Origin: Malacoraja senta
Lineage: Eukaryota
DNA: 64,000 nt
Assembly: GCA_038087875.1 (NCBI GenBank)
Contig: CM075977.1
Span: 84,506,001-84,570,000, forward strand
Reading direction: 5' to 3'
Shown: positions 2,641 through 47,093 of the stretch, piece after piece
How positions within the stretch are numbered: the first letter of the stretch is position 1
Layout of the letters: every line of letters starts with the position of its first letter
Made by a program: the position numbers and the translations under genes
The notes under the pieces: generated by a model
The model's database searches: none
Seen by the model: the letters and a program-made list of their open reading frames with translations, nothing else
What the model was told of the DNA's origin: nothing

Positions 2641-3039
2641 TATGTGGACAGATAAAGGGAGTTAATGTTTCAGGGTGAAGACCTTTCAACACAAACTTCT
2701 GATGGCAGCTCACACATCTAAAACATTAACTGACGTGACTGCAGTTTCTTTTGCTTTTGTGATGAAGCCTGGAGTACAAGGAATCTACAGAAATAGTTCA
2801 AAGCCTTCAAGAGTCCTGATCCTCTGATGTGCCTGCTGTTCCATGATGCCATCAATCAGGCCAATCAAGAAAAATAGCTTAAGAACATTTGTAAAGAAAA
2901 CCTAAAATCAGAGGTTTCAGAACCAATATCATGCGTAATGCTCAAAATGGCATCTTTTGATGAGGTGGGAATGCTGCTCTAACAGTGTTGTCCAAGATAT
3001 CTACACCTCCACTCATAATCCCATGCTCATTCTCTGCAG

Positions 3040-3212
3040 GGAAGTCGCTCAGGAGGTGGACAACAAGCTCCAACTGTTCAAAGAAAACCGGAGGAAGAAG
3101 AAAGACCGTAAAATAAAGAAGCGGATGAGGAAGGGGGATAGTTGCAGCCTGCCTGGCCTCACCTGCTTCACACACAATAATGAGCACTGGCAGACACCGC
3201 CCTACTGGAACT
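3040..3212 (+). CDS. SULF1: SULF1 exon, [57 protein letters not shown]
   Basis: Acceptor tctctgcag ends at 3039 and donor gtaagc starts at 3213. It carries the basic cluster and the [15 protein letters not shown] motif typical of SULF1/2. Confidence 0.96.
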
Positions 3213-6105: not shown

Positions 6106-6230
6106 AAGGATGTGGAGGGTCGATATATTTCACCTATTTTCTGCTTTGTTCACTTACCAGTTGGAATGCATTCAGAAATAATGCGTTCTTCAGAGAATAA
6201 CATGACAAACACTGTGCTCTCTCATTACAG

Positions 6231-6373
6231 TGGGTTCTTTCTGTGCATGTACAAGTTCTAACAATAACACGTATTGGTGTTTGCGGACCATCAATGAGAC
6301 TCACAACATCCTATTCTGTGAATTTGCCACCGGCTTTCTTGAATATTTCGACATGAACAATGATCCATATCAA
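6231..6373 (+). CDS. SULF1: SULF1 exon, [48 protein letters not shown]
   Basis: Acceptor ctcattacag and donor gtaagg; highly conserved C-terminal sulfatase segment; phase 1 in, phase 0 out. Confidence 0.97.
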
Positions 6374-7718
6374 GTAAGGAGATTTTATTTTTGTTATCAA
6401 CAATTAAAAATTGTATTAATAATAAGACAATGCAGTTGATGGAAGCCATTGATTGTGTTTATTACTTATAATACCTAGATTTATAGTCCTGATTGTTCCA
6501 TTGCTTTAAGAGAAGACATGAGGGAAGGTGACATTTGCAGCTAACAGTTATTTTGGCAATGAACGTGCCCTAAATTATATTTAATATATCAACAACTTGA
6601 TGGTGCCTAAACACAGTTCTAAGCATCTCATGCAATGGTTGTAGATAGTGGAAAGGGACACCAAAGGGATGGTTAAGAACTCTTGTCATCCATAAAAGTT
6701 AAGGCATGTAGTAGGTTTTTGGACTGGGGCAGAAAATACCTGGTGGAGCAGTAACCATAGAACCTGCAGCTGCTTGAAGGGGTAAATACAACACTGGGAG
6801 AGAAGCGGGGAGTGCAAGTGGGGAAAGACCAGGGAAGTATCTTTAAGCATAAGCAGCATTCATGTGTGTGCTTTTTAAACTGTGATTCTACTGGTTGATC
6901 ATGTGGCACACTAACATTGCAGTAATGTCACATAATCACAGACAGTCTGAAATGTTCAGTCTGCATCAGAACTTCAACGTGTTGAATGTAGTAATATTCT
7001 GCCTAACTAATTAACCATTACTGCTTTGTATGTGTGTCTCAGTGCATTCTTGAGGGTCTTTAAAATTTACACAGAGGATGGTGGTCCATGTGGAATTATT
7101 GAAGAACATTGATAGGTCTCACTGGGCAACTTTCATGCTGTAGCATAAAACTGATTTTTAGCAGTGTTTTCATGCAATCACTTGCATGACAGCTCTTTGG
7201 TCCAAAGCCTTTGCATGTACCGACTAAGTGTACAGCTTAGGAAACCGTAAGGAAAGTGCCATGTTCCGCCATGTCACCATTGTGAGGAAGAACAACATGG
7301 CTGCCTTGGCTGGTTATATTAGGAGCATGCTGTGCTTGTATGCACAGTGCTGCACAATGGGCAGCAGGTACAATTGCCAATCAATGCAAAGATGGGCAGA
7401 ACATGACAGATGAGGAACAAAATCTGTTCCATTGTCATTATAACGAGTTGTCGCGTGAGCAGGCTGGAGCACTCAGTTCATTACTAATTTCTGAGAGGCA
7501 AACGGACATCCAGATAATGAAAATAATTTAGAGAAGAGCTATTATGAACAGAGCACTTCAAAACTAAGGGCCATTGCCAGGAACAAGCCCTTAGGTCAGC
7601 CTCACTCACCTACAGCATGTACAATAATGGGGCATAAACTTACTGCTCAGCGTACTAGAAAATTGTCACTCCCCTTTTTATAAAAGTGTCTGGCTACAAT
7701 ATAAAAAGGATTAGAAGC

Positions 7719-8844
7719 GCATTTCCTCAAGATGTGCGGTATCCAACATACTTGCAATCCACATTTTGAGCGTTGGTATTGGTGTATTTTTCCAAAATTT
7801 CAATATTAATTTTTTTGCTATTATTAAACCATAATTAAAAATTGACTTTTCAGATGAGCTCAATTTGTTCCCGTCTTCCATTACCCCAAATATAATCAAT
7901 TCATTATTGGGTTCCATTTTTGTCTTAAATAATTTTGTAAATATTTCGAAAATATCACTCCAAAATCCATGAAGTTTTATACAAGAAACAAAAGAGTGTG
8001 TTATAGTTGCGTCTTAGGTTAAACATTTATCGCAAATGGGCGATATATTTGGATAAAATTTATTTAATCTTGTTTTTGCGTAATATAATCTATGTAAAAT
8101 TTTAAATTGGATTAGGTTATGTCTTGCGTTAATCGAACACTTGTGAATGTATGTCAAATACTTTTCCCATGTAGCCTTCGTAATTTTTATCAATAATTCC
8201 CGTTCCCACTCTTCTCTAATTACCTCGGTCACAGGTAAATCTATATTTAAGATACTATTATATAAATATGATATTAATTTTTGTGTATCAGCTTTTATAT
8301 TCATTACTTCTTCTAGTAAATCAGGAGTTATTTTTTGATATCCCTGTATGTATGTCTTCAAAAAATTACAAATCTGAAAATATTTAAAATAATGAGTGTT
8401 TTTCAGTTTAAATGTTAATTGTAATTCCTCCTAATAGATAAATTTGACCAATTCATAACGAGTTGGTCTCCATTTGTTGTATTTTTGGAAACATATGGTG
8501 CAAAACAGGTGTAAAAGCTAATCCGTGACTGCGGATGGTCAAGATTATAAATGATCTCCTTCTATTTTCTTTTCTTCTCTTCTCTTCTTTTATTCTCTTT
8601 CTTCTATTTTCTATGTCTCAACTTTCTTTTTTCATTCTTTATTTTTCTTTTTCACACACTATATATCTCACATTTTTCTATTTTTCATTACCTAACTTTT
8701 TTCTTTTTCTTCTTTATTTCAAAAACATTTTTAAATAAGAAGCTGTACATAAAAGGTATTATGAAAATATGATTGTATACAATTGTACTTACTTCTAATA
8801 AAATTAAAATATTTTAAAAAAAATTTAAAAAAATAAAAAATTTA
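7719..8844 (+). mobile_element. L1-clade LINE 3' fragment with 5' inversion (inverted part ~7719-8424, forward part ~8425-8844), A-rich tail and 16-bp TSD
   Basis: Minus-strand ORF2 C-terminal peptides (QFKILHRLY...CDKC...HSFVSC, AHLEEMRF) continue on the + strand as FLLIDKFDQFITSWSPF. TSD aaaaaggattagaagc at 7703-7718 and 8845-8860. Confidence 0.88.
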
Positions 8845-9479
8845 AAAAAGGATTAGAAGCATCTGATTATGACTTCAAATGTTCCAACAAATTTTATTTT
8901 GCTAACCATAGGTTACTGTTGTTATCCCAAACAAAGCAAGTAAACAGTTTTCTTGCAATGGTTGGTTACTCCTGACTATTACATACCTCATGCCTAATGC
9001 TATCCGATCCTATCCGAAACGTCGCCCATTCCTTCTCTCCAGAGATGCTGCCTCACCCGCTGAGTTACTCCAGCATTTTGTGTCCGGCTTTGGTTCTAAA
9101 ATGTCAGTTTTCTGCAGTTAAATGAAATAATTACTGAGTATTCATATGCATATGGTATGAATTTTGGCTACATACGTTTCTCTCAAAATAATTGGTGTCG
9201 TTGCTCTGTGACCCACCTGAAGTACCCCTGCTCATGTGGCAACTCATTATAGTGATAATGGAACAGATTTTGTTCCTCATCTGTCAAATTCTGCCCATCG
9301 TTCAATATCTGTCCATCGAGATAAAGTACACCCCCCTCCCACCCACCCCGCTCTCATAAAGATAAACACAACCATCCTTGGTTCTGGCATGGTATTCATG
9401 ACAATATTGTAATGTGTCTCATTCTTGCAGCCCCTGGTGAAAAGGGAAACTGAATTCTGTTTTGGTTTTCTGGTTTCAG

Positions 9480-9603
9480 CTGACAAATACAATTCACATG
9501 GTTGACCGGGAAATACTTAATCAGTTGCACATACAGCTAATGGAATTAAGAAGTTGCCAAGGACACAAGCAATGCACTCCACGGACCAAGGGGGCAGAAA
9601 CAG
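9480..9603 (+). CDS. SULF1: SULF1 exon, [41 protein letters not shown](G/E); 124 bp, ends in phase 1
   Basis: Acceptor tggtttcag and donor gtaaca; contains the [16 protein letters not shown] motif. Not shown in the ORF track; translated by hand. Confidence 0.95.
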
Positions 9604-10640
9604 GTAACACTTGTAATTCACAGATAGCACACTGATTTGTTCTAAGCTCCCTTCACAGGGAGCCTTCACCTCGCAGTGTGAAATTAATCATAAAACTAAA
9701 TTAATTCCTGGTGTTGTCCTCATATGTCAATTTTCCTGAATGGTATCTTTGCATCAGTGAAATTTAATTAATCCCCTCGTTTTTCCTCATTTTTACCAGA
9801 CAAAATCCTCATGGGAATCTGAAATATTTCTAATGGACTAAAACACTGCAGCACACTTTATTCAAAAGCCCCATAAAGATTATATTTTGACAAAGGTGAT
9901 CCTATCTTGAGAGTCCAATGTAGAACACAATGTCACATGGAACTTGACAGAACAGAACACAATTGGACACACACGATTACTTGTTTTTTTAAACCTGCTG
10001 GTCCACTTTATGTTTTCCTGTCAGATATAAAAAATTACACATTTTCTGCTTTCATTTTCAAAAATATTTAATTCTTGCTGTACATCTCAGTATCTAAATG
10101 TTGATAGTTATTAACAGTGGGAAAAGTATAATTACAGACATTTAACTGCAAGGGAGCAGTCATCTAAATGTCACTTTTTAAATCAGTTAAAAGAACACAG
10201 AAGCTTTCGATTGACATTGACACTTTTGATTTGGGATAATTCATGAAAGCCTTTGTTTTTTGCCCTGAAGCAGCCGGCAAATCCAGACTAATAATCCCAA
10301 TGTTCAGTTTGTATTTTCTATGATTGCAGAGCCTTGAAATCAGATTGATTTTAAAAAAATAAGTGGTCAACGTATTTTCTGCAACTAATTTAATGAAGAA
10401 TTTCATTAAATTCATTTAGCTCTCCTTTTCAACAAGAATGTGTCATATTTTTAAATTGCCCAAGTGTGTAGGCGAATGATAGAAACTGGCTTTTGTTGGT
10501 TGGGGTTTGTTGAAAATGCGAGCAAATACAATGGGATTCATGTAGGATTACTGTAAAAGGGTGATTGACGATCAACGTGGAATCAGTGAGCCGAAATGGG
10601 TTTCTCTCCATGACTCTTGTGGAAATTATATAAAGTGTAA

Positions 10641-11387
10641 AGGGCCTGTCCCACTAACGTGACTTTTCAGCGACTGTCTTCGACCTTCAAGCTCGAGGGC
10701 ACTCACCTGAAAAACCTCGAGCTGGATCGACCGTCAGCAATGAAACCGCGAGCTGGATCGACCAACCGCACACACACGCACAAACACATCGCAAAGGCGG
10801 GGGCCAGGGAAAGCGGGGGAGCGCTGTCTGAAATTCACATGGTGCAAAGCCAAGGTGACACCCGCGATGAACAGGAAGGTAAAGGATGGCTGGCACAGTT
10901 ACTGTAAGTCCTTTAGAGAACGTGGAGAGGGGAGAGAAGGGGGGAGAAGGGGGAGAAGGGGGGGAGAAGGAATGGAGACACTTTTTAAGAATCCAGACAA
11001 CTTATAATAAAGTTTAGCGGGCATTTAAATTACCGGTCGGTTTTCCTTGGTTCTGAAAACTCCAATGAGCCAATTAAAATGCTCGGTCAGCAAAGGAGAT
11101 TGCCTACGGTTGCCCTCGACTGCCTATAACTACATAGCGACCCCACTCCACTGCACTACGAGTTCAAAAGAACAATGCCGAACAATTTTTACTTGCGGAA
11201 AAATTTTCGGCATGCTGTAAAATTTTCCTCGACCAAACTGAGGCCGCGAGTAGGAGGAAACTTCCCTCGAGCATGAAGGAGAATTACAGTGACCTCCTAG
11301 GACCACGTGTCGACCATGCTGTGAGTTTGAGTCGAGCGCAAATTCGTCTAAACTCGCAAATTAGGTTGCCGCAGTGGGACAGGCCCT
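10641..11387. mobile_element. Non-autonomous PIF/Harbinger DNA transposon (MITE)
   Basis: Perfect 15-bp TIRs agggcctgtcccact (10641-10655) and agtgggacaggccct (11373-11387), TAA on both flanks; CpG-rich interior. Confidence 0.88.
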
Positions 11388-11840
11388 TAAGAAAGTGAAA
11401 CAGTGCAATAATATATACAGTTATTTGGTAGCATCAAGCTCACCCTATTGTTGAAACAGGTTAAAATGAGGCACACATGTGATGTCAAGGAGGTAATTTT
11501 GACATTTGATCACACAAGATTGGTAATGGAAAACTGCTCACCCATTTTATAGCTTTCCCAATGTTTATTTTTATTGAAGCCACTGGGAATATGGTCAGGA
11601 GTGATTGATACGAGCTGCCGTTTTTCTATCAGCCCTTTTACACATTCATTCAAAGTCAAAATTTACCAACATAGTCTTGTATATGATTTCACTGCTGATA
11701 AAGTATATACAACAGCTTATTTTCTAAACTGATCTAGTTTACAATGAAACAAGGTGGCAGTTGTTCTCCCTTTTAGTTTGGATATACAAGCCATGTTCTC
11801 CTGGTTATTTCTCATGTCAAAGGTTACTTTTCCTTTCTAT

Positions 11841-12130
11841 TTTAACCACAATCCATTTTTCCTCAGGTAATGCATGGACAGATACAATGTGAATAATTTT
11901 ACTGTTCTAAAATCATTAACATAAATTACTCTTGTATTTTCCTAATCAGGAAATAAAGATGGAGGAAGCTTTGATCAGCACAGGTATCCATACTTTTTAT
12001 TCTCTTCAACAACTTTCATTCCGTCTAATTGCATGAGCTGGCCCATTGAAGCTTCGTTTACTTTGATTGTATGTTCCATCCAGCATTCTTTGATGCATGA
12101 TAGCTCATTCTTTAACAAATAACAACTAAT
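11841..12130 (+). promoter_or_regulatory. Cluster of splicing-regulatory motifs around the SULF1 microexon (RBFOX TGCATG x3, QKI-type ACTAAT/CTAAT)
   Basis: TGCATG at 11871, 12030 and 12094; ACTAAT at 12125 (also 12490); CTAAT inside the acceptor at 11942. Confidence 0.6.
11950..11983 (+). CDS. SULF1: SULF1 34-nt penultimate microexon, (G)NKDGGSFDQH(R); frame-shifting cassette
   Basis: Acceptor ttttcctaatcag and donor gtatcc; resembles SULF1 GNKDGGSYDLHR; phase 1 in, phase 2 out. Confidence 0.92.
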
Positions 12131-20832: not shown

Positions 20833-22728
20833 GAATGATGTCTAGGTCCTGCTGCATGCAGGCATTGACTGATTAAGCTGCTGAGGAATTGCCGATGAAA
20901 TTGAACTTTGTAGAATTGTTAGTGAACTTCCACACATCTGACCTTACGATAAAAAGAAAGTCATTGATGGAGTAATGAATGATCCTTGGGCTTTGGATAC
21001 CTCCCTGAGGAACTCCTGCAGTGATATGCTGAGGTTGGGATGCCCTTCAACAATCATAACCATCAACCTTGGTGCAGGTACAACTCCCTTTCATCCCCAG
21101 TCCGTTAAACCAGAATTCCTTGATGCCACATTTAGTCAAGTGTTGTCTTAATGTTAAAGACAATCACTGTCACCTCACATCTGGAATTCAGCTCTTTGAT
21201 TTACATTTTGACCAGGCAGTGGTAAGGTCTTTATAAAGTGCTTCTGGCAAAGTGCAGAAGGTTATTGGTGATGAAGTGCCGCTTGATAGCACTGTAAAGA
21301 ACACCTTCCATCCTCTTGTTGGTGGTTGACAGTTGACTAGGCGGTTAGTTCAGCTTTTCTATTGGATTTGTTTTGCTTTTAGAAAAACGGGATATTCCTG
21401 AGTAATTTTTTTGTTGGGTAGAGGAGGGTTAGTAATTGTACTGAAATCGTTTGACTCGAGATGTTGTTAACACTAAATTGCACTGGGATGTTATATGATC
21501 CAAAATCCTATGCTGTGTCCAGTACTCTCAACTATTTCTTAATGAAGATTATAATTTCCTAATATCACGTGGCATGATCAAGTTGACTGGGTAATGTGAT
21601 CTGTGGTTGTGAGGTCTCCTGAGGAAGCTGAGATGGATTATTCAAGCATCTACTTGCCAATTCTGTCTGAACGTGCAAGCTATTCCTCCATCGTTGTCTT
21701 TGACACTCACTTGCTGGCCCCCATTTCTTCGGGATGGAGATATTCTTGAAGCCTCCTCTCCCCCACCATTAACCTTTAATTGTGCTCTACCTTACACCAC
21801 CAGAAGTGACAGGTCTGCAGAGCTTTGGCCTGATCCATTGGTTATAACTTCACTTGACTCTCTCTAATGCATGCTATTTCTGCTGCTTAACAAGCATGCA
21901 TTCCAATCCCACCAGGTTGCTCCTGTCTCCACATTTAAGGGAAAGACTGAAACCAAATATTCAGAAGAGTAGAATGCAAAGGTGTTAGAGCTACTGATTG
22001 GGGAAGGACATGCTGTTACCCATATCTTAAGCAATGCCATTGACAACATGAGGATAATGGGTATTACAATCTGGAAGTAGATGCTAAATGTCAATTCTGA
22101 GATATTGTATGTATTAAATAAGACATTTGTGTTAAACTGGAGATGTTTTTTGTTGAACTAAACTTTCTGTCAAATATGTATTAAACAGGGACAAGGAAAT
22201 AAATAAAATAAAGTAAAGGTGTATATATATTTATCGACATGTGTGAGCAGAGGCATCATTGCATGTGTGAGCAAGAAATAATATGGATATTATCCTAAAA
22301 TAATATGATCATTAATGTCGTTTTTTTTGTAAAACGTATCTGATTTCACGGTAATCTAATATTAAGGGCAGTAATAAAGTGGATTTTTTTTTTAATAACA
22401 ACGTGGTTGCTGTAAAATCAAAATGGTCACATATTTGACATTTCCTTTACAGAATCTGCTTTTGACATTTGTGACTTTGTTTTATTAATCATTTCTCTCT
22501 GAGCATTCTTCTAGTGTCTCATGTTGGGGTGTGTGCTTTCAATCTGCTTCTGCTGTGCAACTTTGTTAATGGCTTTTTGTAGTGAGATGTGCTGTCTCTA
22601 ATTTTGCTTTGAATAACCAGCTGATAGTGGAGCAGATGCATGTCTGCACACAAGCACAGTGCTTCAGCAACTATGGATGGTCGACGTACGTGAAAATAAA
22701 CTATTTCAATCTTTGTTTCTGCCTGCAG

Positions 22729-22759
22729 AGGACAGCTATGGGATGGATGGGAAGGTTAA
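22729..22759 (+). CDS. SULF1: SULF1 terminal exon, canonical frame (R)GQLWDGWEG*
   Basis: Acceptor tttctgcctgcag ends at 22728; canonical SULF1 C-terminus GQLWDGWEG; TAA at 22757-22759. Confidence 0.95.
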
Positions 22760-23630
22760 TCCACTTAAACTGCCAAACTTAACGGAAAATATCAACTGGG
22801 GAGAACTTGAAAATTTGTACAGTGTGGATGAAAGCTTGTTTGAACACAGGCATAATTATAGCCTTAGCCTTGGTGACTGGACTAATTACTGGAAGGATGT
22901 AGATAGAATGTTTGCACTGCTTAAGACTTTTTCTGGACACATTAAAACTTCTGAGGCCATTGCGCTAAATAAGGGCGGGACTCTTGATTTGAGCATTGAC
23001 ACCACAGCACTGGACATGGCACCAACTCCATTGCCTATTTTTGGAAATGTGTTCTCTACTGAGCCCGAGGATGAATCTAGTGGCACGACTGTATGGGAGG
23101 CAACAGAAGCACAACCTGTTGTACTTGCTGACTCTGATGGTACAAATATGAGCACAACCATTACAAGTGGTGAGCGTCCACAGGAGGAAGCAATAAACAA
23201 CAATCATATACCCGATAAGCATTTATCAAACACTGAATGGTGGCAACATAATCGGACAAAACAGTTGACAAAGGAATGGGGGGAGCTGGAATATGACCAC
23301 GGTTTCAGTGGAAATGGACTGGTGGAAATGGAAACCAGAAATAGCTTCTTTCTTCAGCAAAGTGCCACATTTCCGTCACCCAGCATCCAGAATGAAGTGG
23401 AGGAGAAGGAGGACATATTTGAAGGCAAAACATATCTTCCTGTTGGCTCTATGAGCCACCTTTATTCCAGAGCTTTCACTGTTCCTCGAGAAACCAGCGA
23501 CAACGAGAAATTGGCAAACGTCCAGCTTCAGGAAGAGCCTGAGAACAGTGGCGAAGGAGGACAAGAGAGCTTCAGTACAGAAGGCAGTGCCTTGCCCCCT
23601 CAATCCTTTCATCAACTCACAGCCCATTGA
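22729..23630 (+). CDS. SULF1: SULF1 terminal exon, alternative frame: 300-aa C-terminal tail EDSYGMDGKVNPLKLP...HQLTAH*, used if the 34-nt exon is skipped
   Basis: Longest ORF in the window (part of track ORF 22659-23630), non-repetitive. The phase-1 G at 9603 plus AG at 22729-22730 gives GAG (Glu) exactly in this frame. AATAAA follows the stop. Confidence 0.78.
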
Positions 23631-23663
23631 TTATTTATTTGGAGGTCAACCATAATCTTTCAT

Positions 23664-23669
23664 AATAAA
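23664..23669 (+). terminator. Candidate SULF1 polyadenylation signal AATAAA (a further ATTAAA lies at 24957-24962)
   Basis: Hexamer about 34 nt after the long-frame stop, followed by U-rich sequence; no transcript evidence. Confidence 0.4.
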
Positions 23670-25129
23670 AGTTTTATTTGATGAGGTCAAAACAAAGCAC
23701 ATTCCATTTCCATAGGAGGTATATTTCATAGCAGCCTGGCGATTGTCAGAATATCACTCACATTATTAATATCATCCGGAATGAGGGAACAAGCTGATAT
23801 TCTTCTTAGCAATGTAATATTTTGCAGTCATCTGTATAACTATGTATTTAAATATTCAGTGTTGTGTCTGGAATAGACATGTCCTAAAGTCCTGTGAAAC
23901 ATTCTTGAAACCTCCATTGGCTGTTCAGTATGTACTTGCTTTAGCTTGTACTTTATTTTTGCCAGGATCTGTGACCAGTCCATTCCAAAAAGCTCTCAAC
24001 ATCCACCTTTTACATGACAGATGTTGAGTACTGTCAGTGTTTTCCTCTCAGTAAATATATTGCACTTTCAAAATTCTTCACAAAACATTTACAAATATGG
24101 ATGTATTAACAGTGCAGAGCATTGGTTCAGTGAGTTTCCAGCTGGTGATTTCAGTTGTAATGTGTAAAGGAAATCTTATTCTGTGTTCTTCATGCTGTAA
24201 CTTGCTCTCACTTATCAATTGTTTCACCTAAAAATATTTAGCATTGTCCTTATTTTTTGTCTTAGTGTCTTTTTTTTTTTTACCTTGGCCTGTATTGAAT
24301 TTCTTCTTTAATGAAGGAACAATATGAAGCCAATGTATTGTATTTTGTTTCAAGTTATAACTTGTTCTCATTATTTCCCACAGAATCTTAAAGGGGTATA
24401 ATCTTTGTGAAAAATTTGTGCTGATCTGTCTTTTTTAGAAACAAAAATGAGGAGGAACAGCGGTCACTTTTACCTAGACAGCGTTGAGTGCAACGGTCAT
24501 AATGATGCACTTTCAATGAGATTTACATTACCATGTGACAGATGGATTACTAGAAAGTTTTGTGTAATTTCCATGAATATGGTGCTCCTTTAAGATTGAA
24601 ACGTAGGCAAAATTGCTTACAATGTACTTGATGTGTAACTGTTTTGATAAATCTGTTTATAGTTTGAATGGCTCGTTTAGCACGATCCTTAGATTCAGTT
24701 GCATGAAGTTTATATAATCTGTGTAGGTTTTTACAGTGGTCACAGATGTTTCTTTTTTTAAATGGTGGTAATGCCACACATTACCAAGCCAATGTAATCA
24801 ATGTGCATAGGTTGGAGACATCAGACTAGTGAAATTCATGCTATGTTCTTTAAAAGATAAAATTTGTAGCAGTGTTTTATTTTTGTCTGTAATTTACACT
24901 GGCCATATTATTTACTGGTAATTACCTGTTGCTTGTTTCTGGATAAACATGCAGTGATTAAACCACAATGCTTAAACTTGCAGTGAGAATGTAAGTGTTA
25001 TTATTGATACAGAGTACCTTCACCAACCTCAAAATTGAATTAAAACACCATGAAGTTAACAACAGTGTATGTTTGATTATAGTTGCCCTGTCATAGCTAA
25101 AGACTTGGTTACTATGTGCAAGAAGATAT

Positions 25130-46329: not shown

Positions 46330-47093
46330 ATGACGTCAAAAACCATGGCGTGATATTTGACTCAGCACTGAAATTTGACAAACAAGTCAATGCCGTGGTA
46401 AAAGCTAGCTCTTTCAGCTTCGGACGATAGCTAAAATAAAACAATTCCTCCACTTTGATGACCTCGAAAAGATCATCCACACATTTATCTCCTCCCGCCC
46501 TGCAACTCCCTTTACACTGGCATCAGCCAATCTTCCCTGTCCCGCCTGCAACTGGTCCAAAACGCCGCAGCGAGACTCCTGATGGGCACCCGAAAAAGGG
46601 ACCACATCACCCCGATCCTGGCCTCTCCCCACTGGCTCCCTGTGCGGTTCCGTATAAACTTCAAGATCCTCCTCCATGTCTACAAAGCCCTCAATGGGCT
46701 TGCCCCCACCTACATAAAAAGTCTTCTCACCCACCACTCCACCTCCAGGCCCCTCAGATCGGCCGACTTGGGGTTGCTGAATATCCCACGGTCTAGGCAT
46801 AAGCTCAGGGGCGACCGCGCCTTTGCGGTTGCAGCCCCTAGACTGTGGAACAGCATCCCCTTTCCCATCAGAACTGCCCCCTCCATCGACTCTTTTAAGT
46901 CAAGACTAAAGACTTATCTATACTCTCAAGCCTTTCCTGACGTCCTCTAAGTGAGGGCTACATGTATGTATGTATGTAGTTTGTTTTGTTGTGCTATTCT
47001 TATAACAAATGTAAAGCACTTTGGCCAACGAGAGTTGTTTTTTAAATGTGCTATATAAATAAATGTGACTTGACTTGACTTGACTTGACTAGA
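46330..47093 (+). mobile_element. L2-clade LINE 3' fragment with (tgact)n tail
   Basis: ORF 46582-46950 gives DHITPILAS.HWLPVRFRINFKILL...RAFAVAAPRLWNSIP...FKSRLKTYLY, an L2 ORF2 C-terminus. Confidence 0.9.

Follow-up and report, generated by a model that had tools for sequence, protein, structure and literature searches.

A conserved alternative reading frame in the last exon of SULF1 encodes a long acidic C-terminal tail with an invariant Ser-Gly motif

Within the stretch of Malacoraja senta DNA analysed here (64,000 nucleotides, termed the window), the last exon of SULF1 contains, beyond its short canonical coding end, an alternative coding tail of 300 codons, which very probably is real and maintained by selection. 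The tail probably also serves as a C-terminus of SULF1 itself rather than as a separate protein, and, judging from the sequence comparisons described below, it has been kept since before the split between sharks and mammals, that is, for more than 400 million years. Taken as a whole, the best explanation is a conserved long SULF1 isoform, produced by using an alternative frame of the last exon, whose tail bears a glycosaminoglycan (GAG) chain; this explanation is given an even chance of being correct, and the more specific proposal that a GAG is attached to Ser193 of the tail is put at somewhat under an even chance. SULF1 and its paralogue SULF2 are 6-O-endosulfatases that edit extracellular heparan sulfate and thereby tune Wnt, FGF, BMP, Hedgehog and GDNF signaling.

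All of the gene parts considered here lie on the forward strand. A SULF1 exon at 6231..6373, which ends in phase 0 and is matched by spliced cDNA contigs of a related skate (L003-L005), is followed by a 124-nt exon at 9480..9603, which ends in phase 1 and has a donor GT at 9604, and by a 34-nt penultimate microexon at 11950..11983, which in the canonical frame encodes (G)NKDGGSFDQH(R). In the canonical mRNA it is this microexon that sets the frame: the last exon then contributes (R)GQLWDGWEG (22729..22759, with TAA at 22757-22759) and the protein ends in ..GNKDGGSFDQHRGQLWDGWEG. Skipping of the microexon puts the last exon into the +1 frame, in which the last 21 residues are swapped for the 300-residue tail (22729..23630; (E)DSYGMDGKVNPL...QSFHQLTAH, with TGA at 23628-23630). 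Skipping of the 124-nt exon, whose length is 1 modulo 3, likewise gives access to the +1 frame, an arrangement found in the Lissotriton X1 model (P0067); the microexon itself reads EIKMEEALIST in the +1 frame and contains no stop. The earlier note had started the tail at 22760, which is merely the first base past the canonical stop; the tail begins 31 nt upstream, at the acceptor at 22729. Following the tail, the remaining 3'UTR (23631..24978) is noncoding in either isoform; the cDNA contigs extend to 24978, and poly(A) signals occur at 23664-23669 (AATAAA) and again near 24957 and 25039. A 19-nt AG..GT-flanked segment at 22660-22678 was also considered as a switching exon and was attributed to chance: it would restore the canonical frame, is unused in the cDNA contigs and, by eye, is not kept in catshark.

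The stop-free run to which the tail belongs (22617-23627, 337 codons) exceeds every other run in both ORF listings of the window, and a run of this length has a chance probability of ~1e-8 per start and of ~7e-5 window-wide. Composition was taken from the 299-residue translation of 22731-23627, and on this basis most of the earlier note's description proves accurate: Cys is absent (0 of 299 residues); the tail is strongly acidic (D+E 49 versus K+R 19, pI 4.5); there is no transmembrane stretch (the highest 19-residue Kyte-Doolittle mean is 0.72); five Ser-Gly dipeptides occur, at residues 68, 117, 146, 193 and 273, as do four sequons (NLT16, NYS42, NMS139 and NRT174); and the quoted peptides are all found (PEDESSGT, ELEYDHGFSGNG, QEEPENSGEGG, INWGELENLY...MFALLK and EDIFEGKTYLPV). 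When compared with composition shuffles, the five Ser-Gly dipeptides are only mildly in excess (mean 2.0, P = 0.04), the four sequons are at chance level (mean 3.6, P = 0.50) and the amphipathic moment of the N-terminal block (0.48) is not above that of shuffles (mean maximum 0.45, 95th percentile 0.57). Because these values are near shuffle levels, it is the ORF and its conservation, rather than raw motif counts, that make the observation strong. The description of the tail as mucin-like, moreover, does not hold: in the skate S+T amounts to 55 residues (18%), proline to 5%, and tandem repeats are absent; in the tails of other species S+T ranges from 13 to 21% and proline from 3 to 15%, with a Thr-rich insert in one teleost alone (P0015).

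A HMMER search returned 38 matches to the tail among 1.84 billion representative proteins, including RefSeq Sulf-1 long isoforms from skates, rays, sharks, coelacanth, newt, birds and primates. Among cartilaginous fish the tail, whether as part of a long isoform or as a tail ORF, is carried by Amblyraja, Rhinoraja, Hypanus, Narcine, Heterodontus, Cetorhinus, Scyliorhinus and Chiloscyllium, and elsewhere by Latimeria, Lissotriton, Ascaphus, Falco, Colius, Macaca, Symphalangus, Sorex and Pteropus; in humans it is intact, the ORF being on record as Q9NTJ8. Residues 822-1120 of Amblyraja radiata Sulf-1 isoform X2 match the skate tail at 98% identity. (P0041, which Logan contributes to the Amblyraja cluster, was discarded as a tail relative; it corresponds to the N-terminal sulfatase part.) Neither Pfam, a PDB profile search nor a search for ESM Atlas look-alikes, carried out for the whole tail and for its N-terminal block, revealed a relative outside of SULF tails.

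Selection is evident specifically in the tail frame. Relative to catshark, dN/dS in this frame is 0.36 overall, 0.20 in the N-terminal block and 0.18 in the FSGNG-EDIFE block, whereas the two remaining frames give 0.93 and 0.62. The three indels between the skate and catshark ORFs (of 3, 3 and 6 nt) are all in frame, whereas 17 of the 21 indel runs in the downstream UTR are not multiples of 3; the alignment with a sister skate is free of indels over the ORF and has 17 gapped positions in the UTR. The first codon positions of the ORF are purine-rich, and a frame of about 270-340 codons is open in each sampled lineage, from sharks and teleosts to primates. Together the homologues, the frame-specific dN/dS and the indel phase bear out the proposal that the tail is a genuine C-terminal extension of SULF1; conservation at the RNA level only is rejected on the basis of the latter two.

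These data also weigh on a more skeptical interpretation, namely that the tail arises from splicing noise or belongs to the generic class of destabilising frameshift C-termini, with the ORF persisting through RNA-level constraint on the 3'UTR. Consistent with such an interpretation, the tail is disordered, the canonical isoform dominates the assembled skate mRNAs, and the flanking UTR is likewise alignable between skate and catshark (67-78% identity). Frameshift tails of this type, moreover, generally lower protein stability according to the available part of Preussner 2020 (PMC7392665), a point that counts against a functional long isoform as well. Nevertheless, it is improbable that noise could account for a frame that is open in each lineage sampled (with a frameshift seen once, in a mammalian ORF, P0011, at ETDF|RGQGG, and with relaxation in mouse, whose N-terminal block is degenerate, reading RAVYRAF in place of KDVDRMF), for a dN/dS well under 1 in that frame only, for indels that are in frame within the ORF and out of frame outside of it, and for a proline content of 5%, which is unlike that of the proline-rich generic class.

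Transcript data indicate that the skipped form is produced. A mammalian RNA-derived contig of 4251 nt (L002) spans the entire coding sequence of the skipped isoform (1115 residues), joined as ..GGCCTTGAAGTTG|AGGACAGTTATGG, and RefSeq models for Amblyraja and Rhinoraja likewise have the skipped junction. The assembled mRNAs of the sister skate (L003-L005), on the other hand, include the microexon in three of three cases, for which reason the long isoform is probably the less abundant of the two. Related-skate RNA (four runs) aligned to 6150-12049 gave zero exon depth, conserved exons apparently having been filtered, with ~6% of the raw-read run covered; an abundant repeat at 9014-9084 dominates these alignments. 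The isoform itself is not new: skipping of the mouse Sulf1 exon is already present in Preussner 2020, the available part of which gives the same 34-nt exon (in Table S1), splice-sensitive RT-PCR primers, a 272-residue frameshift tail and a brain mass spectrometry peptide from that tail, SNPRLSLEDWTNYLRAVYR (PMC7392665).

Such fused products need to be weighed against the idea that the ORF encodes a separate protein of ~308 residues without a signal peptide, which would start at a +1-frame ATG within the microexon (MEEALISTEDSYG...) and would make the SULF1 mRNA dual-coding. Gene callers give exactly that ORF when applied to canonical mRNA contigs from skate, frog, bird, mammal and fish, and databases list it both as a hypothetical protein in humans (Q9NTJ8) and as a gene of its own in Ficedula, Gopherus, Pteropus and Rhinoraja. 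Yet the ATG arises incidentally from the codons for the canonical K-D-G-G (AAA GAT GGA), is missing in mouse (K-E-G-G), and lies downstream of an ORF of more than 800 codons, for which a re-initiation route is not known; conservation in the tail frame begins at the splice junction and not at the ATG; the widely kept sequons, such as LPN(F/L)T and NES, suggest secretory passage; and RefSeq and a Logan transcript fuse the tail directly to SULF1. A separate protein is thus very improbable.

The tail comprises four conserved elements: an N-terminal block (termed the N-block), the motif ESSG, the motif (D/E)FSGNG-x-E-x-E, and a part running from EDIFEDQxYLP to EGS(A/G). The N-block (residues 14-65 of the tail, 22770..22925; LPNLTENINWGELENLYSVDESLFEHRHNYSLSLGDWTNYWKDVDRMFALLK) is helix-prone, is common to SULF2 tails, and contains the invariant residues L26, R40, W50, K55, V57, D58 and F61; conservation is highest over the first ~65 residues of the tail, with 94% nucleotide identity to catshark and a dN/dS of 0.20. 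The earlier note envisaged a short folded segment here, of which a highly conserved, helix-prone block is what stands. AlphaFold2, when applied to the tail (27 sequences), predicts helices at 23-29 and 47-80 with a pLDDT of 50-63 and disorder otherwise; with helices of such low confidence, and with no known domain family matched in Pfam, PDB or the Atlas, the N-block does not qualify as an autonomous domain and may instead be a fold-on-binding element. For the full 1120-residue long isoform (16-sequence alignment) the AlphaFold2 model has a mean pLDDT of 30, the sulfatase domain likewise being unresolved.

Conservation of the remaining motifs was counted over 27 aligned tails (22 non-mammalian and 5 mammalian, from sharks to primates and including teleosts). 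The candidate GAG attachment site, Ser193-Gly194 (ELEYDHGFSGNGLVEMETR, 23283..23339, dN/dS 0.18), occurs within (D/E)FSGNG, with Ser-Gly in 27/27 tails and SGxG in 26/27 (Amblyraja has SGNE); in every lineage its 26 flanking positions include 5-8 acidic and 0-3 basic residues, which are scattered and do not form a dense 5-of-7 cluster. The other acidic site, Ser117 within ESSG (TEPEDESSGTTVWE, 23058..23099), retains its Ser-Gly in 21 of the 22 non-mammalian tails and has lost it in all five mammalian ones, and the dipeptides at S68, S146 and S273 are limited, or nearly so, to cartilaginous fish. Hence the expected conservation of Ser-Gly sites is found for S193 and, outside of mammals, for S117, whereas the other three sites of the skate are mostly lineage-specific; none of the four skate sequons is universally conserved in the 27 tails. 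Further along, the acidic motif EEKEDIFEGKTYLPV (23400..23444; consensus EDIFEDQxYLP) has a nearly invariant L236 and P237 and is kept in primates, and the C-terminal motif STEGSALPPQSF (23574..23609) has E284 and G285 conserved in at least 90% of tails and an invariant S286. The latter serine occurs as EGSA in cartilaginous fish and tetrapods and as EGSG in ray-finned fish; that is, the residue following it is Ala, not Gly, in all non-actinopterygians. The long isoform (P0001) possesses sulfatase domains and an N-terminal hydrophobic leader, by eye the SULF1 signal peptide, which would expose the tail to the secretory pathway. The designation of the tail as proteoglycan-like is therefore upheld at the level of motifs only, by the invariant DFSGNG, its acidic context and its closeness to the SULF2 site.

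These features suggest the following mechanism. Skipping of the 34-nt exon or, more rarely, of the 124-nt exon before it would cause the last exon to be read one base out of register; the resulting long isoform, because it retains the SULF1 signal peptide, would carry the tail through the Golgi, where Ser193, and perhaps Ser117 and Ser286, would be xylosylated and would receive a chondroitin/dermatan (or heparan) sulfate chain, as does Ser583 of SULF2. The acidic, GAG-bearing tail would then counter the basic hydrophilic domain, and SULF1 would thereby move from the cell surface into the medium, with its activity altered. Splicing, in other words, would give SULF1 what SULF2 has constitutively. 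In SULF2, a chondroitin/dermatan sulfate (CS/DS) chain is attached at Ser583, within the mapped site GGDFSGTGG; attachment requires the adjacent acidic sequence EDQDDKD at -11 to -5, and the chain raises both release into the medium and activity (El Masri bioRxiv 2021; Takeda-Uchimura Res Sq 2026, PMC13405426). Canonical SULF1 is GAG-free, and the Ser-Gly nonapeptide alone is insufficient for attachment in SULF1, but SULF1 engineered to carry CS has its medium/cell-layer ratio raised 4-8-fold and is more active (El Masri bioRxiv 2021; Takeda-Uchimura Res Sq 2026, PMC13405426). By analogy, the behavior of the engineered protein fits the idea that the tail would alter surface retention; the insufficiency of the nonapeptide speaks against a GAG on the tail, as does the fact that a dense cluster of the EDQDDKD type is not reproduced there. 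Also counting against the proposed long isoform with its GAG are the SGNE of Amblyraja, which shows that the glycine of SGxG is dispensable in one tail, the Ala after Ser286 outside of ray-finned fish, the loss of ESSG in mammals, the degenerate N-block of mouse and the frameshift in P0011.

It is possible, though doubtful, that the tail is a selected SULF1 C-terminus without any GAG, in which the conserved blocks act as short linear motifs for interaction: the helix of the N-block would engage a partner or dock onto SULF1 itself, FSGNGLTELE and EDIFEDQxYLP would serve either as peptide ligands or as a site of tyrosine sulfation or phosphorylation, and the polyanionic disordered chain would by itself mask the basic hydrophilic domain or tune stability. 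In agreement with this, it is the N-block that is most conserved, and it is present in SULF2 tails that lack FSGNG; F192, N195, L197 and E199 are as conserved as the Ser-Gly, which goes beyond what a xylosyltransferase usually demands; the net charge is about -30 without any glycan; and the acidic cluster fails to match the SULF2 requirement. A GAG-free tail does not, however, readily explain why the invariant dipeptide is exactly Ser-Gly, in SGxG, within an acidic, disordered and secreted context and within a hexapeptide close to the proven SULF2 site, nor why ray-finned fish have further GSG/EGSG motifs at the two other sites. In the literature, no glycoproteomic report on a SULF1 tail and no description of a function for the tail were found, and the published SULF1 experiments that were found all used the short cDNA.

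Should the long isoform indeed carry a chain at its SULF2-like site, SULF1 could gain by splicing a SULF2 property, and isoform choice, besides expression level, would decide its range of action; the presence of the CS chain on SULF2 only, where it controls release and activity, is a main reported biochemical difference between the two enzymes. A broader reading, which is tentative and rather unlikely as it stands, is that the last exon of the ancestral vertebrate Sulf gene already encoded two overlapping C-termini and that the long form of SULF1 is a splice-regulated proteoglycan. SULF1 and SULF2 would then descend from one ancestor with a short end (..GQLW(D/E)GWEG) and a long tail opening with the N-block; small frame-switching exons would select between these; and a chain on the invariant DFSGNG serine would set how far SULF1 spreads from its source cell. 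If so, this would constitute an unrecognised layer of control, from sharks to humans, over heparan sulfate 6-O-sulfation and morphogen gradients.

Splicing is known to create or add a Ser-Gly in an acidic context in appican (APP without exon 15) and in CD44 v3, which yields tissue-limited proteoglycans. There, however, an exon is removed or added in frame, whereas in SULF1 a frameshift exposes an entire 300-residue module hidden in the 3'UTR. A closer parallel is provided by the long SULF2 isoforms of ray-finned fish (Sulf-2b X1/X2, gar Sulf-2 X4 and sturgeon Sulf-2-like X2), which likewise use the +1 frame of the last exon, reading EDRFGKDGK over the canonical GQLWEGWEG, and whose tails share with those of SULF1 the N-block of ~70 residues (hhalign 98.8% probability, E 6e-17). 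After the N-block the fish SULF2 tails differ: a hydrophobic block (YLTTLATPALLLREAGAE) is followed by a poly-Glu stretch and by CDCS at the end, and FSGNG, EDIFEDQxYLP and EGSA are absent. The constitutive SULF2 protein, as a paralogue, resembles the long SULF1 isoform in its acceptor hexapeptide (DFSGTG, versus DFSGNG in the tail), which in both cases lies in a disordered acidic stretch, but its site is located in the hydrophilic domain, whereas the SULF1 motif is located in a splice-dependent tail, has a looser acidic context and bears a glycan that is hypothetical. The closest match in genetic organization is to the coding 3'UTRs of Preussner 2020 (PMC7392665), as characterized in the available part of that report, in which a penultimate exon whose length is not a multiple of three precedes a last exon harboring the stop, and skipping extends translation into the 3'UTR without nonsense-mediated decay. 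For this class at least 20 new residues are needed, of which at least 10 lie beyond the canonical stop. In the skate, the 34-nt penultimate exon precedes a last exon that holds the canonical stop, and skipping yields 300 new codons, of which 290 follow that stop; because the new stop is in the same exon, nonsense-mediated decay of the skipped mRNA is not expected. A mammalian contig (L002) shows the skipped junction, and a tail peptide is on record for mouse, whose 272-residue tail is homologous to that of the skate; the available part of the report mentions neither the depth of the tail's conservation nor a role for a glycan (PMC7392665). Members of the class are there described as proline-rich, PxxP-bearing, destabilising and conserved among mammals, whereas the skate SULF1 tail is acidic and proline-poor, with a conserved Ser-Gly and with purifying selection that predates the split between sharks and bony vertebrates; it is a deeply conserved counter-example to the notion that frameshift tails encoded by 3'UTRs are mostly young, proline-rich destabilisers.

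The 3' end of SULF1 lies on the + strand of the window. Exon limits taken from spliced cDNA contigs of a sister skate (L003-L005, ~97% identity), and then checked by eye, define exons at 1427-1504, 3034-3212, 6231-6373 and 9480-9603 (124 nt, ending in ..TKGAET plus one base), a 34-nt microexon encoding (G)NKDGGSFDQH(R) at 11950-11983, and a last exon running from 22729 to at least 24978. Canonical SULF1 ends within this last exon at GQLWDGWEG, with a TAA at 22757-22759; when the microexon is omitted, the reading of this exon shifts one base downstream, to (E)DSYGMDGKVNPLKLPNLTEN..., and continues through 300 open codons to a TGA at 23628-23630. The exon lengths 34 and 124 both equal 1 modulo 3, and the microexon has no stop in the +1 frame, so omission of the 124-nt exon leads into the same tail; the RefSeq model of Lissotriton is an example. 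Because the new stop sits within the last exon, nonsense-mediated decay of the long-isoform mRNA would not be expected under established rules.

Several sequence signals lie near these exons. Three TGCATG (RBFOX-type) words, at 11871, 12030 and 12094, fall within a 224-nt span around the microexon (27 occur on the + strand in 64 kb), which is consistent with regulated inclusion. A 19-nt segment, CAACTATGGATGGTCGACG, at 22660-22678, lies between AG and GTACGT, 51 nt upstream of the last acceptor, and, if spliced in, would also give back the canonical frame (..ATMDGRRGQLWDGWEG, then stop); it is absent from the sister-skate cDNA contigs, by eye is not kept in catshark, and is probably due to chance. 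An AATAAA at 23664-23669, 34 nt past the tail's TGA, may mark a proximal poly(A) site coupled to the long isoform; the assembled mRNAs extend to at least 24978, and further poly(A) signals occur at ~24957 and ~25039, close to their end.

Exhaustive searching with HMMER matched the tail to 38 of 1.84 billion representative proteins, named by exact look-ups and a second search. These include Amblyraja radiata Sulf-1 isoforms X1/X2 (98% identity over the tail), a Rhinoraja longicauda model that shares the ..TKGAET|EDSYG junction, other rays (Hypanus, Narcine), sharks (Heterodontus, Cetorhinus, Scyliorhinus, Chiloscyllium), Latimeria (for which the tail-bearing Sulf-1 is the only model), and Lissotriton, Ascaphus, Falco, Colius, Macaca, Symphalangus, Sorex and Pteropus, along with many additional tail ORFs on RNA-derived contigs. 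In human the ORF is likewise intact and has long been on deposit as the hypothetical protein Q9NTJ8. RefSeq models the long isoform in many species, members of three batoid genera among them, and a 4251-nt contig from a mammalian RNA run encodes a complete 1115-residue skipped isoform, with the junction present and the microexon sequence nowhere. According to Preussner et al. 2020 (PMC7392665), mouse Sulf1 has a listed 34-nt exon with a 272-residue frameshift tail, splice-sensitive RT-PCR primers were designed for that exon, and a tail peptide, SNPRLSLEDWTNYLRAVYR, was reported from mouse brain. Thus the hidden tail as such is already on record, in databases and in that one publication; in the literature that could be searched, no description appears of how deeply it is conserved, of its modular anatomy or of its SULF2-type site. 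In skate the long form is probably a minor isoform, because the assembled mRNAs contain the microexon. RNA from related skates, aligned to this region, matched only repeats, and its zero depth over the exons bears on neither isoform.

Among the repeats, an intronic short element at 9014-9084 is extremely abundant in related-skate RNA runs (summed word depth up to ~6e5) and shows numerous joints and loose ends; it is either strongly expressed or present in very many copies. A 162-codon open frame at 46462-46947 and peptide motifs such as RHPFLLSRDAACPAELLQ, shared among ~2300, 6000, 37800 and 51950, indicate dispersed transposable-element fragments within and downstream of SULF1.

The tail's reading frame itself appears to be under selection. 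At 337 codons, its stop-free run far exceeds any other in the window (P ~1e-8 per start), and base composition by codon position is biased as in coding sequence (G 32% at position 1 versus 18% at position 2). Against catshark genomic sequence (L006), dN/dS is 0.36 overall--0.20 for the N-terminal block (tail residues 14-65), 0.65 for the middle, 0.18 for the FSGNG-EDIFE region and 0.26 for the C-terminal end--versus 0.93 and 0.62, with 8-31 stops, for the other two frames. At the nucleotide level the ORF is 82% identical, its N-terminal block 94% and the downstream UTR 67-78%; the ORF has three indels (3, 3 and 6 nt), whereas in the UTR 17 of 21 indel runs would shift the frame. Compared with the sister skate, 13 substitutions and no indels occur in the ORF, and 33 substitutions and 17 gapped alignment positions in the UTR. 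Conservation at the RNA level alone, which might have kept such an ORF open, cannot explain the frame-specific dN/dS, the phase of the indels or this ORF/UTR contrast. It is highly probable that the tail is a genuine alternative end of the SULF1 protein, maintained by purifying selection throughout the jawed vertebrates.

Translation bore out the composition described in the earlier note: the tail lacks Cys and hydrophobic stretches, has 49 D+E versus 19 K+R and 18% S+T, and contains the peptides quoted there, four sequons and five Ser-Gly dipeptides (tail residues 68, 117, 146, 193 and 273). Compared with shuffled sequences, P is 0.04 for the Ser-Gly count and 0.50 for the sequons, and the amphipathic moment shows no excess; by themselves, these motif counts are weak evidence. 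In an alignment of tails from 27 species, five elements stand out. The N-terminal block has the consensus LPNxTEDxNWQGLEDLYSVNESLYExRxNYxLSLxDWTNYxKDVDRMFALL; seven of its residues are invariant. Of 22 non-mammals, 21 keep an acidic E-(D/E)-S-S-G site, which all five mammals have lost; ray-finned fish have further GSG motifs there. Ser193-Gly194, within (D/E)FSGNG(L)xE(L)E, does not vary (27/27) and has 5-8 acidic and 0-3 basic residues around it. A fourth element is EDIFEDQxYLP, and the Ser of the C-terminal EGS(A/G) is invariant (SG in ray-finned fish, SA elsewhere). Conservation of the Ser-Gly sites thus holds for Ser193 and, outside mammals, for ESSG; the other three skate dipeptides are confined, or nearly so, to cartilaginous fish. 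All 27 tails are acidic (pI 4.2-5.4) and essentially without Cys; their S+T (13-21%) and Pro (3-15%) contents and lack of tandem repeats do not fit the description "mucin-like". The proposed folded start survives as a conserved, helix-prone head: in the AlphaFold2 model from this alignment the tail is disordered (mean pLDDT 46), and residues 23-29 and 47-80 form low-confidence helices (pLDDT 50-63); searches of Pfam, PDB and the Atlas found no relative outside SULF tails. Overall, the tail is an acidic module, predicted to be disordered, in which a helix-prone head and a SULF2-like candidate Ser-Gly acceptor are conserved.

In some mammals selection on the tail may be relaxed. The ORF of one mammalian RNA contig (P0011) loses the frame exactly at ETDF|RGQGG, and the mouse tail, as given in Table S1 of PMC7392665, has a degenerate N-terminal block (RAVYRAF) and VSGNG at the Ser-Gly site. 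Because ESSG is lost, the mouse block is degenerate and one ORF is frameshifted, caution is warranted regarding the tail's role in mammals.

RefSeq SULF2 long isoforms of gar, sturgeon and many teleosts (P0129-P0143) likewise read their last exon in the +1 frame (EDRFGKDGK over GQLWEGWEG), and their first ~70 tail residues are homologous to the SULF1 N-terminal block (hhalign 98.8%, E 6e-17). Hence the overlapping-frame last exon and this block appear, from sequence, to be older than the SULF1/SULF2 duplication. Beyond the N-terminal block the SULF2 tails have diverged: FSGNG is missing, and what follows is a hydrophobic block, a poly-Glu stretch and a terminal CDCS. Fish SULF2 hydrophilic domains have (D/E)FSG(T/M)G.

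SULF2 carries a CS/DS chain on Ser583 within GGDFSGTGG, for which an adjoining EDQDDKD cluster is required, while canonical SULF1 has no chain; when both elements were moved into SULF1, occupancy reached ~30%, the medium/cell-layer ratio rose 4-8-fold and activity increased, but the Ser-Gly nonapeptide alone was insufficient (El Masri et al. 2021; Takeda-Uchimura et al. 2026, PMC13405426). Judging from the motifs, GAG attachment is the likeliest single mechanism for the tail, a reading that we favor tentatively, at a little under even likelihood. The acidic context in the SULF1 tail is looser than that required in SULF2; the main rival, a glycan-free tail acting through interactions or charge masking, is a less probable though substantial possibility. 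For GAG attachment, the tail's invariant DFSGNG differs from the corresponding SULF2 hexapeptide by one residue and lies in an acidic, disordered setting; at the level of motifs, this likeness to SULF2 is the main support both for the earlier note's proteoglycan idea and for its proposed consequence, a change in SULF1 surface retention, diffusion or activity.
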